A stretch of DNA of 27,491 nt, taken from Paramicrosporidium saccamoebae KSL3. Lineage: Eukaryota; Fungi; Cryptomycota. Position 1 is the first letter of the stretch; every line of letters begins with the position of its first letter. Location of the stretch: the NCBI GenBank assembly GCA_002794465.1, contig MTSL01000063.1:44244-71734 (forward strand). The letters run 5' to 3'. The position numbers were made by a program, and so were the translations under genes. This document shows, piece after piece, positions 11,996 to 27,491 of the stretch. Below the pieces are notes generated by a model. It saw only the letters and a list, made by a program, of their open reading frames with translations, was not told the origin of the DNA and made no database searches.

Positions 11996-13579
11996 ATGAA
12001 GCTTTGTTTGTTCCTCGTCTTGGCTCTTTGGACAGCATTGAGTAAGTCGCTGATAATTTCATTTAGTCCGTACATTCTTACCAAAACACATGGTGCAACA
12101 GTCGTCGACTATATATTTAATACTTTTCTGATCGACCAGCAGAATATCCAAGTTGTGGCAAGATTGCTAACGTATTCCGAATACAATTTCCCGGAGCATT
12201 TCCAGCATCATGGAGAATCTGAGGAGCGCATGGCGGAATTGCAAAGTTTCATCGAGGACCAGCAACTCCATGGAAGCATCTTTTCGGTCCAAAAACTATT
12301 CATGAATCCTAAACTTGCGTATGCCATGTTTACGCACGAACGACTATCCTACAATTTCAACTTGGTCGGAGATGTTTGCTTGCAGTCCAGCAACTATTAT
12401 GTCTTTTCAGATCCTCACTTGCAGCGGCAATTCCTTACCCAGGCGATCCCCCGGATCAGCCAGCTTCATAATACTCGGATTTTTCAGGATCATATTAGTC
12501 TTGGCAGCAAAGAGGATGTGGCATGGCTATTCGGTGCCCTCGAGCCACACATGACGCCAATTCTATTGGAAATATTCCTTGGCAAACAGGGTTGGATTTG
12601 CGACGAGTTTGTCCCATTTATGAACCCATTGCACAAGAACGATAACGCACGGCATATGAGGCGATTAATGGTCGTCTTGACACTGATAAGGGTTAGGAGA
12701 TTTTATGGAATCGCCTATGAGCAGAAATTAGTACACGATTTGTGGGCTACTCTTTGCGACTCGGACGCAAACATTGACTCCAAACCATTTCAGATGACGG
12801 CATCCGGTGCAGAGAAGATGTATGAAAAGACTTTGGCTGCTGTAGTGCAGACTGAAAATAGCAGCTATTGGTGCATCCTAGCCGCTTTGCTGCTACAAAT
12901 GTATGAGATCAAAGGCATCGATAATGATTTGCTAGCTGCTCACGCCGGCAGTCTTCTTTCCAATGTTCGGTTTCTGTCGCCCTACTATTCGCAACAACTC
13001 ATTACAAAGTTATCTTCCCGGTCCAAAGTTGTGCAGACGTTCGACGCTATACCCCTTTCACATCGACCAGCATTTATTCTCCCGTTACCCGACAAAGTGC
13101 GGCGGTGGCGGTACTGTGGTCCCTTTAGCATGCTCAGCAAAAACGTTGAATTGAACAGCGACAGTATATTTGAAGACATTATCGAGTTTGTGTTTCGTTT
13201 CAGGATAATTCCCTTGAATATGTGGATTTACGATGCAAAGGACGGCACTTTTCAACACGTCTCCGAACTGGCAATTCGAAAGGCTGAGCAAATCCTCGAA
13301 GCGAGAGCGCTCAATTTAGCTGGTATTAATGGCCTAAATACCATGAGAACCATTTTCATGGCATGGGCGTTTCTCCTAATGGACCGACAGACTATGGATT
13401 TATCCTGTATGTTTGTAGCATCGGATGTCACATGGCAAGATTTTTATGAACGAATAGCCTGCACTTATGACTGTGACGTTTCCGAGGTTCTGGAAATGTG
13501 GGGAATATCTTCTCACTTTACCCTCCATGAATTGAGATCCCTGATAGATCAGTCCTACCAGGCTGGAACTAACAGTTAA
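11996..13579 (+). CDS. Secreted paralogue family member 1 (unknown function; possible truncated HECT N-lobe C-terminus)
   Basis: Signal-like MKLCLFLVLALWTALSKS (alternative ATG at 11990). Family motifs ISFSP, LHGSIFSVQKLFMNPKLA, WLFGALEPHMTP, WRYCGP and FTLHELRSLID. Confidence 0.85.
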   Translation: MKLCLFLVLALWTALSKSLIISFSPYILTKTHGATVVDYIFNTFLIDQQNIQVVARLLTYSEYNFPEHFQHHGESEERMAELQSFIEDQQLHGSIFSVQKLFMNPKLAYAMFTHERLSYNFNLVGDVCLQSSNYYVFSDPHLQRQFLTQAIPRISQLHNTRIFQDHISLGSKEDVAWLFGALEPHMTPILLEIFLGKQGWICDEFVPFMNPLHKNDNARHMRRLMVVLTLIRVRRFYGIAYEQKLVHDLWATLCDSDANIDSKPFQMTASGAEKMYEKTLAAVVQTENSSYWCILAALLLQMYEIKGIDNDLLAAHAGSLLSNVRFLSPYYSQQLITKLSSRSKVVQTFDAIPLSHRPAFILPLPDKVRRWRYCGPFSMLSKNVELNSDSIFEDIIEFVFRFRIIPLNMWIYDAKDGTFQHVSELAIRKAEQILEARALNLAGINGLNTMRTIFMAWAFLLMDRQTMDLSCMFVASDVTWQDFYERIACTYDCDVSEVLEMWGISSHFTLHELRSLIDQSYQAGTNS

Positions 13580-13654
13580 GTTGCCCTATTAACCTTGGTG
13601 TATTCTTTGTTAATCTTGTGTGACGTAATAGAATAATAAGCCAGGCCATTTTTG

Positions 13655-13742
13655 AGTGATATGTGATATTTAAGATGAGATGTGAGACATAAAATGTGAA
13701 ATGTGGAATGTGTGATGCATGATGTGTAATATGTTATGTGGT
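13655..13742 (+). repeat. Degenerate ATGTG-rich low-complexity tract
   Basis: About seven ATGTG occurrences in ~80 bp between convergent members 1 and 2. Confidence 0.7.
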
Positions 13743-13862
13743 AAGGCAGTTTACCAAGTTCACGGGGGCGATGCCGTTATTCGGAATCCTAGCTGGACAA
13801 AAGGCCTCATCCTACAAAAATAGCTCACGATAAGAGTTCCTTGACCCACCATACATCACCAT

Positions 13863-15386
13863 TTATAGATGGCTCTTATTAGTATCAATTAGTTGCCGTA
13901 GTTCCCCCAAAGTAAAAAACGGCATCAATCGCCATTTAAGAAACTTTCCTAATAGATCCAATTCGGGAATCTTGGGGCCAACACGTTCAAAGAAATCAAC
14001 CCATTCGCTGTCCTTTTCAAAGAAAAACTCAAAGTCTAATTTTCGTCTCAACAGAATCAGATATGGTATTGCTGCCACTATCAGCTCCACATGTTGTTCT
14101 AAATATGGTAATGTGAACGGATTCGCCCGCAATCTGAGGCTAGCGTGGCCTATTAGAATTTCCGAGATGTGCCTCTCGCTGCGTTCGTCTTTTTCGTCTA
14201 TCACGTATAGAGTTAAATTCAGTGGGAAGAATTTGGCCGAGAGCGCCTTTGAGAATTCTGCAGCTTCATCAGTCCAAGAACAATGCGACTTTCGGATCAT
14301 TGATAACGGCCCAAGCTTGATCCACTCCGAGCGACGCTCCTCCAATGGCCGTGCGCCTAATGGCAAATAAATACTGTCGAGTCCCCAAGGGTTCTGCGCT
14401 ACATTCACAAATTCTGAGAATGCCTCCAATGTTTGTTTAATCGCGTATGGACTCTGTATATTTCGGGTATTGGTGATGAAAAAGTCTAGTTTCCCTACAT
14501 ATTTGACGGGAGTACGTCTGAGGAGCAATCCAAATACCGACCAAAATGTCACATCTGTTCTTTCAGAAGCCATATCTTGCAATAAAGCAGCCTTATCCTC
14601 CCAGAATGTCTCTCCATTATTGTACTGCAGCGTCTTCCGCGCTAATCGAAAAAGTCTACATTGAATCGAGAAAGTCTTGGGATGGCCCTTTGTCAATCGT
14701 CCCGTCGCGTCGCTATAGGATTTTTCCAACGTCAGCAAGACGTACAAATTCCTCACCATCCAATCTTGGCCGTCTTTGTCCATGTAGGAGGCGATCAGGT
14801 CATAGCAGTCGGAACGGATGTATAACTCTAGCAGCTCTGGTGTCAAATTGTTCGGCAAGAGTAAAGCAAATAGCCAGTCAAGGGACACTTTGTCTGCTCG
14901 TTTCCATGATTCAAATGGTCTAGGTGACGTTATCCTTGTGAGCTGCCCAGCTGCCCTTTTCCAAATATTCTCCCACATTTTCTGGTTGTCTCTGTAATCT
15001 GTAAACAGCGGGCCCGAACGTGTCATCAGATTGACATTAAGGAGGCGTTGAGTGGTGAAGAATGCGGCCGCCATGGTCGGATTTTGTAAGAGCTTGGGAT
15101 AGCTGAACAGCCTTGAGTGAACAGATTCTTCCGTGTCCAATGCCAGTAAGCCATCAATTCTGGACAGTGACTCTGCACGAGTATTGTATATTCCGTAAAA
15201 TGCAAACTCGGAATAATCGAGGAGTGCCACTACCTTGAGGACGTTCTCTAGCTCAAGACTAAAGTTCCATAGAATGGCCTCGGAAACCGATAGACCGTGC
15301 TGCAAAAGAAGCTTTCGTGGCGTAAAATTTACCAAAACTCCTGTCACAAGACGACGCACGAGAAGCAGAAATATCACAAGGATCAT
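13863..15386 (-). CDS. Secreted paralogue family member 2
   Basis: Hydrophobic N-terminus MILVIFLLLV; VNFTP, HSRLFSYPKLLQNP, WLFALL..LTP, PLEERRSEWIKLGP, FTLGELRQLID. Confidence 0.85.
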   Translation of the reverse strand: MILVIFLLLVRRLVTGVLVNFTPRKLLLQHGLSVSEAILWNFSLELENVLKVVALLDYSEFAFYGIYNTRAESLSRIDGLLALDTEESVHSRLFSYPKLLQNPTMAAAFFTTQRLLNVNLMTRSGPLFTDYRDNQKMWENIWKRAAGQLTRITSPRPFESWKRADKVSLDWLFALLLPNNLTPELLELYIRSDCYDLIASYMDKDGQDWMVRNLYVLLTLEKSYSDATGRLTKGHPKTFSIQCRLFRLARKTLQYNNGETFWEDKAALLQDMASERTDVTFWSVFGLLLRRTPVKYVGKLDFFITNTRNIQSPYAIKQTLEAFSEFVNVAQNPWGLDSIYLPLGARPLEERRSEWIKLGPLSMIRKSHCSWTDEAAEFSKALSAKFFPLNLTLYVIDEKDERSERHISEILIGHASLRLRANPFTLPYLEQHVELIVAAIPYLILLRRKLDFEFFFEKDSEWVDFFERVGPKIPELDLLGKFLKWRLMPFFTLGELRQLIDTNKSHL

Positions 15387-26527: not shown

Positions 26528-26613
26528 TGGCTTTGAGCATGAAATGGGACGATTAGTATAAAGACTTGTACGTTGTATAATAGTGCAATAGTTATCACAA
26601 ATAACTGGGTTGC

Positions 26614-26788
26614 TGCGTAGTGGGGACACTACCACAGACGGGAAGGGGGCTTGTTCGCTGCTAATCCTAGAATATTATGGATGCACATGTCGCGTAGTGG
26701 GAATGATACCACGACCCAAGTCATACGTAAATCTGTTCACTGCTAATCCTAGAATAGTATGGATACACATCTCACTGTCCTCAAAATA
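26614..26788 (+). repeat. Dispersed non-coding repeat, copy 3 (partial tandem duplicate 26614..~26688 plus 26692..26788)
   Basis: GCGTAGTGG...CCACAGACGGGAAGGGGGCTTGTTCGCTGCTAATCCTAGAATA matches copy 1. A second unit carries the perfect 55-bp core. Confidence 0.9.
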
Positions 26789-26904
26789 CATGCAACATTG
26801 TAGGCTACACAGTCCTGGTTGCCAATTACAACAATTGGATAAATCTGATCGCAGACTGCGCCTTAATTTACTTTACAAAACTACTGGCGAGATTAAGACT
26901 GCCG

Positions 26905-27491
26905 ATGAGGCTGATGCTGCTGGTGGGGTTGCTTCCACTGTTTCTCTGCATTCAGGTCATTGTCACCCCAAACCAACTCATTAGTCAATGTACCGTCGGC
27001 AGCATTCGCATGCTTTTTCAGACCTTTGAAATTGTGGAAAGCACCATTCCGTCAATAATGGCATTGCTACGATATCGACGATACAATTTCAAACTGCCAT
27101 ACGAAGAGACTTACGAATCACCAGAGCGCGTTATCTTATTACGCAAATTGTATACGGACCACAATTCGCATGACACGCTATTTGGAGCATTGAAGTTGGT
27201 GACCAATCCGGACCTTTTTCAGTTCGAGTTGGGCTATGCAGGAAACTTGCTAGCACAGGATTGCAATCTCAGTAGCAAACATTCCAGACTTATCCCACAA
27301 TGCATGGTCGACCATGCGGTGCAGGAGGTTCAAAAGATGCAATCACGAAAGTTTCTCAAGACGCTCATATATGGACTGGACGACAGTCAGCAACGTGCAT
27401 TATTGGCTTCCATGGCCAATGTCATGACGCCAGCCATCATGGAGCTCTTTCTTCATGTCACAATTGCCAAGGAACAGTCAATGCTAAATGG
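26905..27491 (+). CDS. Secreted paralogue family member 8 (runs off the window end; absent from the supplied ORF track)
   Basis: Manual translation from ATG 26905 is open to the window end: MRLMLLVGLLPLFLCIQVIVTPNQLISQCTVGSIRMLFQTFEIVESTIPSIMALLRYRRYNFKLPYEETYESPERVILLRKLYTDHNSHDTLFGALKLVTNPDL...ANVMTP. Confidence 0.85.
   Translation, partial: MRLMLLVGLLPLFLCIQVIVTPNQLISQCTVGSIRMLFQTFEIVESTIPSIMALLRYRRYNFKLPYEETYESPERVILLRKLYTDHNSHDTLFGALKLVTNPDLFQFELGYAGNLLAQDCNLSSKHSRLIPQCMVDHAVQEVQKMQSRKFLKTLIYGLDDSQQRALLASMANVMTPAIMELFLHVTIAKEQSMLN

Follow-up and report, generated by a model that had tools for sequence, protein, structure and literature searches.

A parasite of the host nucleus, Paramicrosporidium occupies a basal position in the microsporidian radiation. 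The DNA analyzed here (the window) is a 27,491-nucleotide (nt) stretch of the Paramicrosporidium saccamoebae KSL3 genome (assembly GCA_002794465.1) that forms the last 27.5 kb of contig MTSL01000063.1 (record positions 44244-71734). It was placed there by an exact match of the protein encoded by its Cdc20 gene, and PMC5701793 confirms the accession. Its left part contains ordinary genes (tRNA-Cys, a WD40 protein, a MAGE/Nse3-type protein, Cdc20 and Dicer). Between position 11996 and the window end, a mechanical listing and translation of open reading frames (ORFs) places eight members of a single protein family, in the order + - - - + + + +. Seven of the eight paralogues are complete, with lengths of 507-531 amino acids (aa), and the eighth, paralogue H, is partial. 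Because the end of the window is also the end of the contig, H is cut by the assembly and not by biology. An intron is needed by none of the copies.

Paralogue A, 11996-13579, + strand: 527 aa; leader MKLCLFLVLALWTALSKS; detected by BLASTP, MAFFT and the family hidden Markov model (HMM); AlphaFold2 model with a predicted local distance difference test (pLDDT) score of 89.3.
Paralogue B, 13863-15386, - strand: 507 aa; leader MILVIFLLLVRRLVTG; BLASTP, MAFFT and HMM; AlphaFold2 model with pLDDT 88.6.
Paralogue C, 16194-17765, - strand: 523 aa; BLASTP, MAFFT and HMM.
Paralogue D, 17871-19439, - strand: 522 aa; the weakest leader, MRAAKLFLLLLQ; BLASTP, MAFFT and HMM.
Paralogue E, 20070-21665, + strand: 531 aa; BLASTP, MAFFT and HMM.
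Paralogue F, 21939-23474, + strand: 511 aa; BLASTP, MAFFT and HMM.
Paralogue G, 24998-26527, + strand: 509 aa; the strongest leader, MLLAVLAIFALLCHS; BLASTP, MAFFT and HMM.
Paralogue H, 26905-27491, + strand: N-terminal 195 aa only; BLASTP and HMM.

For paralogue D, a longer TTG-started ORF that reaches position 19787 overlaps the gene for Rrp15 on the opposite strand and was not taken as coding.

The eight ORFs encode deeply diverged paralogues

In an all-versus-all BLASTP comparison, with E-values computed for an assumed database of 1e8 residues, 26 of the 28 pairs were detected, 24 of them with E<1e-5. The identities range from 20 to 30%, and the alignments are mostly full-length and co-linear. 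No pairwise match was returned by BLASTP for B-C and C-H, yet all three of these proteins match the family profile strongly. A six-frame scan of the window with the family HMM recovered the eight copies, at E-values of 1e-40 to 1e-141, and no further family fragments. In the MAFFT alignment, the shared motifs FTP..L, E...R, H..IF...KL..NP, WLF..L.PHMTP, PL..R...W...GP and a terminal FTP.EL..LID are visible. These comparisons show that the eight are true paralogues of a deeply diverged multigene family.

An earlier note on this stretch had described eight co-linear paralogues in the orientation given above, seven of them complete, and the ORF listing, BLASTP comparison and HMM scan all agree with that description. 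The motifs it listed are those seen in the alignment, and the hydrophobic leaders it placed at all eight starts are found by hydropathy, with that of D the weakest. The paralogy it proposed is highly significant, and a match to a housekeeping family was not found. DNA-level repeats between the copies or flanking them are absent from the window, and for this reason a mobile-element origin of the array was rejected.

Conserved residues and predicted structure

Conservation along the protein is high at residues ~1-122 and ~450-523 and low at residues ~200-345. Across ~100 members, the most conserved columns (numbering of A) are Trp480 (W480, 94%) and Y69, E74, R78 and K100 (89% each), followed by H92 (86%), Y119 (85%), W371 (84%), F508 (83%), and N104 and N408 (78% each). 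A conserved cysteine is not found among the top 50 conserved columns of this set. The near-invariant cluster of polar residues points to a conserved activity or ligand that the copies have in common, and not to free diversification.

Structures of A and B were predicted by AlphaFold2 from family alignments, with a pLDDT of 89.3 and a predicted template modelling score (pTM) of 0.87 for A and corresponding values of 88.6 and 0.87 for B. The two models have the same order of ~30 helices along with a small beta-sheet, located near residues 376-421 in A. The models show a predicted compact, mostly alpha-helical fold that forms one confident unit without a known relative. A scan of 46 members against Pfam identified no family common to the members, NCBIfam returned none, and a sequence profile search of the PDB matched only designed helical repeats and no relative. 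At E<0.001, Foldseek found no match in the PDB for either model or in BFVD for the model of A. The best Foldseek E-values are 0.03-0.17, with a template modelling (TM) score of at most 0.25, and the lists are dominated by solenoids of the ARM, HEAT, PUF, PPR and TPR type.

The likeness to alpha-solenoids extends to the models themselves, which consist of stacked paired helices and whose best, non-significant, Foldseek neighbors all belong to this class. Such solenoid-like stacking would fit a role as a binding scaffold. Unlike for alpha-solenoids, however, sequence searches detect no repeat family (no member has a Pfam match to ARM, HEAT, TPR, PPR or PUF repeats), the TM scores do not exceed 0.25, and the models contain the small beta-sheet (~376-421 in A) as well as terminal modules, at both the N- and the C-terminus, that are irregular.

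N-terminal leaders and deposited gene models

All eight window copies start with Met and 0-3 polar residues, which are followed by a hydrophobic stretch of 7-15 residues. The conserved phi-x-phi-x-F-(T/S)-P-x-x-L segment comes within a few residues of this leader. Reading of the sequences reveals a clear small-residue -3/-1 pattern in five of the eight. By hydropathy, the eight copies contain no other convincing membrane-helix segment, and HDEL, KDEL or a hydrophobic C-terminus is found in none of them. In a strict hydrophobic-leader test, 70 of 93 N-terminally complete family members scored positive, compared to 1 of 112 Cdc20 homologues used as controls; this share is judged by hydrophobicity, whereas the published criterion for a large gene family, a signal peptide or transmembrane domain in more than 50% of members, uses SignalP and TMHMM. 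The family probably enters the secretory pathway.

These leaders are poorly represented in the deposited gene models. In GenBank, A is fused with the upstream Dicer in a 2013-aa model (window 7015-13579), and the junction, which joins ...FCPVT to CPYILT, deletes the leader of A. Paralogue E is fused with Rrp15 (window 19489-21665) in PJF19466.1, a 671-aa record named "Nucleotide-sugar transporter", with the loss of the first 12 residues of E. An identity of E as a nucleotide-sugar transporter was rejected, as there is no Pfam match to that family, no membrane segment beyond the leader, and the record is an Rrp15-E fusion. The GenBank model of C begins at the internal Met37 and thus lacks the leader, and neither F nor H was found in any protein record. 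In the uncultured relative described below, Dicer is a stand-alone gene of 1335 aa. Because it is a separate gene there, the Dicer-A and Rrp15-E fusions are read as annotation artefacts; the fusion or truncation of the A, E and C models is taken to be a probable artefact. With family leaders mostly missing from the public proteome, secretome screens on deposited proteins would be defeated.

Distribution and copy number

Copy number, clustering and taxonomic spread were addressed with the family profile, as the earlier note had suggested. Among 1.84 billion cluster representatives, 121 clusters were matched at E<=1e-3, 88 at E<=1e-10 and 38 at E<=1e-30. The sources of thirty of the 121 were checked: P. 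saccamoebae accounts for six (PJF19466.1, which contains window copy E, and PJF16601.1, PJF18647.1, PJF20152.1, PJF16460.1 and PJF17157.1), and the rest are metagenome proteins from JGI/IMG, Logan or ENA. Among these 30 clusters the family is restricted to the clade, with no homologue from named microsporidia or other fungi. The contigs examined belong to compact eukaryotes that are syntenic with P. saccamoebae.

A second array is present in P. saccamoebae on contig MTSL01000213.1 (record ~61,000-74,400), where seven head-to-tail copies lie between eIF4E and Mon2. The first two genes of this array are fused in GenBank into one 1054-aa protein, PJF16601.1. Another copy (P0148) is single at its own locus, and three more (P0146, P0147 and P0205) are found on other contigs. 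From the eight copies in the window, the seven in the second array and these four others, the genome therefore contains at least 19 copies, above the large-gene-family threshold of at least 10 paralogues per genome. P. saccamoebae reportedly has ~3,750 genes, of which the family would make up ~0.5%.

The family is older than the species and evolves by gain and loss

An uncultured relative, represented in JGI samples 3300036987, 3300037657 and 3300037044 and in run SRR12926096, has a Cdc20 that is 58% identical to that of the window. It retains an LMBR1 ... MAGE-Cdc20-helicase-Dicer block, followed by Ufd2. Past Ufd2 and a small gene lies a four-gene family array that abuts Rrp15. Because Rrp15 adjoins a family array in the relative too, the locus is homologous in the two organisms, and this syntenic array indicates that the family array and its neighborhood predate their split. 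The Ufd2/U-box gene and the small unannotated gene (no Pfam match), which lie between Dicer and the array in the relative, are absent at that position in P. saccamoebae; as Rrp15 of P. saccamoebae is also inverted, the locus has been locally rearranged. Another two members, which are more divergent, are scattered among housekeeping genes on a 98-kb contig from JGI sample 3300036987.

Family members of the relative share 22-32% identity with any window copy. For the neighboring genes, identities between the two organisms are 58% (Cdc20), 56% (Rrp15), 48% (helicase), 48% (MAGE), 44% (Dicer) and 39% (a membrane protein). By this comparison, the family copies diverge much faster than the genes around them. 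The small gene between B and C was considered as a rate control and found unusable, given an uncertain coding frame and an identity of only 49%.

A closer sister lineage (JGI samples 3300042203, 3300042204 and 3300042205) preserves two gene adjacencies, C-(small gene)-B and E-F. Here, B' has an amino acid identity of 64-66% to its window orthologue, F' one of 61-69% and E' one of 52%. By the Nei-Gojobori method, the sister-lineage orthologues have a proportion of synonymous differences (pS) of ~0.45-0.57 and a ratio of nonsynonymous to synonymous change (dN/dS) of 0.2-0.45, and these comparisons show purifying selection. Four in-frame TGA codons interrupt B' and F', each at a site where P. saccamoebae has TGG or CGx, and at least three frameshifts are present as well. 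Two separate assemblies show the same lesions in B', and the homologous stop of E' and F' is likewise TGA. Because of the nonsense codons and frameshifts, the recurrence of the B' lesions and the use of TGA as the normal stop, B' and F' are assigned as pseudogenes. A reassignment of TGA in the sister lineage was rejected, as TGA terminates E' and F' normally and frameshifts are also present. The visible part of E' is intact. The family thus appears to evolve by birth and death under overall purifying selection. In a neighbor-joining distance tree of 79 members, the topology is star-like and saturated; the window copies are interleaved with environmental sequences, and the other P. saccamoebae copies fall in other branches.

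These results also bear on what the earlier note had said of the family's age and origin. Its view of an old, diversified family rather than a recent duplication is borne out by the 20-30% identities and the syntenic array of the relative. No named family had been recognized, and the Pfam, NCBIfam, PDB sequence and Foldseek searches described above likewise provide no significant relative. The note had also placed the DNA in an intracellular parasite of the Rozellomycota lineage, which P. saccamoebae is. Its proposal of a lineage-specific expansion holds in part: the family is clade-restricted and has at least 19 copies, but it is not species-specific, since the array is also present in at least two further uncultured relatives.

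Comparison with known systems

Of the kinds already known, the one closest to this family is that of the signal-peptide large gene families of microsporidia. These are clade-restricted and without Pfam domains; most have no structural relative, and exposure to the host is presumed (PMC10393165). Like NemLGF1 and others of Nematocida and Pancytospora (PMC10393165), the Paramicrosporidium family consists of multi-copy paralogues, and its carrier is likewise an intracellular parasite, reduced and from the Microsporidia/Rozellomycota lineage. A leader of the secretion type is seen in most of its members, as judged here by the hydrophobicity test, and the family shares with those families the restriction to a clade, the absence of a Pfam domain, AlphaFold models without a solved structural relative and a presumed exposure to the host. 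In contrast, no sequence relationship between the two was found in Pfam or profile searches. The Paramicrosporidium family is also smaller (at least 19 copies versus 100-240), far more diverged internally (20-25% identity) and, given the syntenic array in the relative, older than its species, whereas the microsporidian families are mostly species-specific. It retains a cluster of near-invariant polar residues, and its host compartment is the nucleus of an amoeba rather than an animal cell.

A similar comparison applies to InterB/DUF1609 (NemLGF26) of Encephalitozoon and relatives, which is likewise multigene, often clustered and thought to interact with the host. Unlike InterB, the 46 members scanned have no DUF1609 match, and size and predicted architecture differ. 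Secreted proteins, signal peptides and gene families are not mentioned in the P. saccamoebae genome paper (PMC5701793), and an account of the family was not found in literature searches. As a protein family it is new; its biological kind is already known.

Proposed role and alternative explanations

The reading that we favor, at slightly short of an even chance, is that of a clade-restricted soluble family that enters the secretory pathway and is exposed to the host, either released or displayed. A short N-terminal signal peptide would direct the proteins, with ~490 mature residues, into the P. saccamoebae secretory pathway, and the parasite could then release or display them within the host nucleus. 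The N-terminal (~45-122) and C-terminal (~450-523) modules may act as a common scaffold that carries a shared polar site composed of Y69, E74, R78, H92, K100 and N104 (numbering of A). Paralogue-specific binding may come from the variable central helices (~200-345). The family would then serve as a host-exposed repertoire of binding proteins or enzymes, shaped by birth-and-death evolution, like the large gene families of microsporidia. Both the host exposure and the term "effector" are things that we only infer from the analysis.

Several observations weigh against this proposal. The leader of D is weak, the leaders were called from hydrophobicity and the -3/-1 pattern alone, and the GenBank models of A, E and C are without a leader. 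C also lacks the FTP motif. The cysteines are unconserved, and the family accordingly lacks the disulphide signature that is typical of extracellular proteins. Finally, the dN/dS values of 0.2-0.45, the near-invariant polar residues and the long-kept synteny fit a conserved function internal to the parasite equally well.

The main alternative, less likely than the favored reading, is a parasite-internal role, in which the proteins enter the secretory pathway but serve the parasite rather than act on the host: as constituents of the cell surface, polar filament apparatus or spore wall, as enzymes that process these, or as proteins in the lumen of the endoplasmic reticulum (ER), Golgi or vacuole. 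The Y/E/R/H/K/N residues, near-invariant over ~100 members, suggest that these share a catalytic or ligand site, and the purifying selection on orthologues, the synteny of the array kept since the split from a relative with 58% Cdc20 identity and the presence of the family in every Paramicrosporidium-like genome fragment examined are also in agreement with such a role. For a structural or housekeeping function, however, ~19 copies that are this diverged (20-25% identity) would be unusual, and the divergence, much faster than that of neighboring genes, and the loss of two orthologues in the sister lineage also speak against it. An ER-retention signal, a membrane anchor or a glycosylphosphatidylinositol (GPI)-type C-terminus is also missing, and the clusters checked include no homologue in named microsporidia or fungi. 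More improbable is that the leader is an uncleaved signal anchor, which would make these type II membrane proteins, such as Golgi-type transferases, whose helical domain lies in the lumen or at the surface of the parasite. In this arrangement, a hydrophobic segment that begins at residue 2-4 would be followed directly, as is observed, by an ordered and conserved phi-x-phi-x-F-T/S-P stretch (AlphaFold2 pLDDT 84-94), and a textbook -3/-1 cleavage site, which several copies lack, would not be needed. A membrane anchor would nevertheless be expected to be longer than the hydrophobic cores of ~7-15 residues, the copies have next to no cytoplasmic tail and lack a basic cluster beside the segment, and neither a glycosyltransferase nor another enzyme family was detected by Pfam or Foldseek.

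The idea that the family is a very diverged N-lobe of a HECT-like ubiquitin ligase, acting on the host ubiquitin system, is highly improbable. It derives from a set of pointers, each of which is non-significant alone: a Pfam HECT match below the cut-off (E 0.004) in 1 of 46 members, HACE1 at rank 4 in the PDB Foldseek list (E 0.11, TM 0.23), a giant-virus HECT ligase at rank 2 in BFVD (E 0.21, TM 0.16) and a resemblance between the family C-terminal F-T-P-x-E-L-R-x-L-I-D-S-S and the HECT motif F-R-P-E-E-I-E-L-L-I-C-G-S. When the family profile was compared to the E6AP HECT domain by hhalign, only the 29-residue C-terminal motif was aligned, with a probability of 0.8%. The PDB sequence profile search returned no HECT chain at E up to 10, and the model of B has no HECT match in the Foldseek top 50. 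Moreover, the protein ends at the motif and has neither a C-lobe nor a conserved cysteine. Based on the hhalign result over 29 columns, the missing C-lobe and cysteine and the lack of a match for the second model, the HECT identity was rejected.

Returning to host exposure, a bolder version can be framed, which we consider unlikely. In this version, the family would be the first effector repertoire of an intranuclear Rozellomycota parasite: secreted proteins of a previously unseen helical fold that are delivered into the amoeba nucleus, with the Y-E-R-H-K-N site providing a new enzymatic or ligand activity on a host nuclear target, the central helices tracking host variation and array genes being gained and lost. 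The family is the clearest candidate for a parasite-host interface, and a specialist would expect such families in this lineage. If its members are host-exposed, they would offer a route to asking how an intranuclear eukaryotic parasite manipulates the nucleus and would reveal whether the "large gene family" strategy is older than canonical Microsporidia. For follow-up, a confident structural model, defined conserved residues and metagenome relatives for comparison are available.

Neighboring genes and intergenic elements

Two non-family genes lie inside the array, and a tRNA gene is found in the left part of the window:

tRNA-Cys (GCA), 2775-2848, + strand.
Rrp15, 19489-20040, + strand: housekeeping gene inside the array, not of the family; Pfam PF07890, E 1.5e-22.
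ORF of 297 aa, 23670-24563, + strand: inside the array, not of the family; hydrophobic leader MRFTAAALLCFVASCTAS; Ser/Arg/Lys-rich.

The 297-aa ORF has no Pfam match and no counterpart in the array of the relative. Based on its leader, it may encode another secretory protein.

The element CGCAAT(A/T)A precedes the start codon by 40-60 nt in three copies, A, B and E (at 11950, 15440 and 20030). Because the other five copies are without it, it is not established as a promoter motif. A promoter motif common to all copies was rejected, as no k-mer occurs in more than four of the eight upstream regions.

Dicer of P. saccamoebae is encoded by two ORFs on the + strand, a short N-terminal helicase-like one (7015-7488) and the main one (7504-11619). 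The Dicer of the relative is likewise split into two ORFs (L002, 7757-8296 and 3765-7772), and the members of each pair are adjacent or slightly overlapping. The presence of this arrangement in both organisms suggests that a programmed frame change or a small intron has been conserved, and not that the assembly is in error.

Tandem repeats are found at three intergenic positions. The Dicer-A interval (11659-11882) contains two copies of a 41-42-nt unit and four copies of a 32-nt unit, and the G-H interval (26652-26773) contains two 40-nt copies that are 82 nt apart. Downstream of Cdc20 (5389-5491), a 24-nt unit is repeated 4.3 times.

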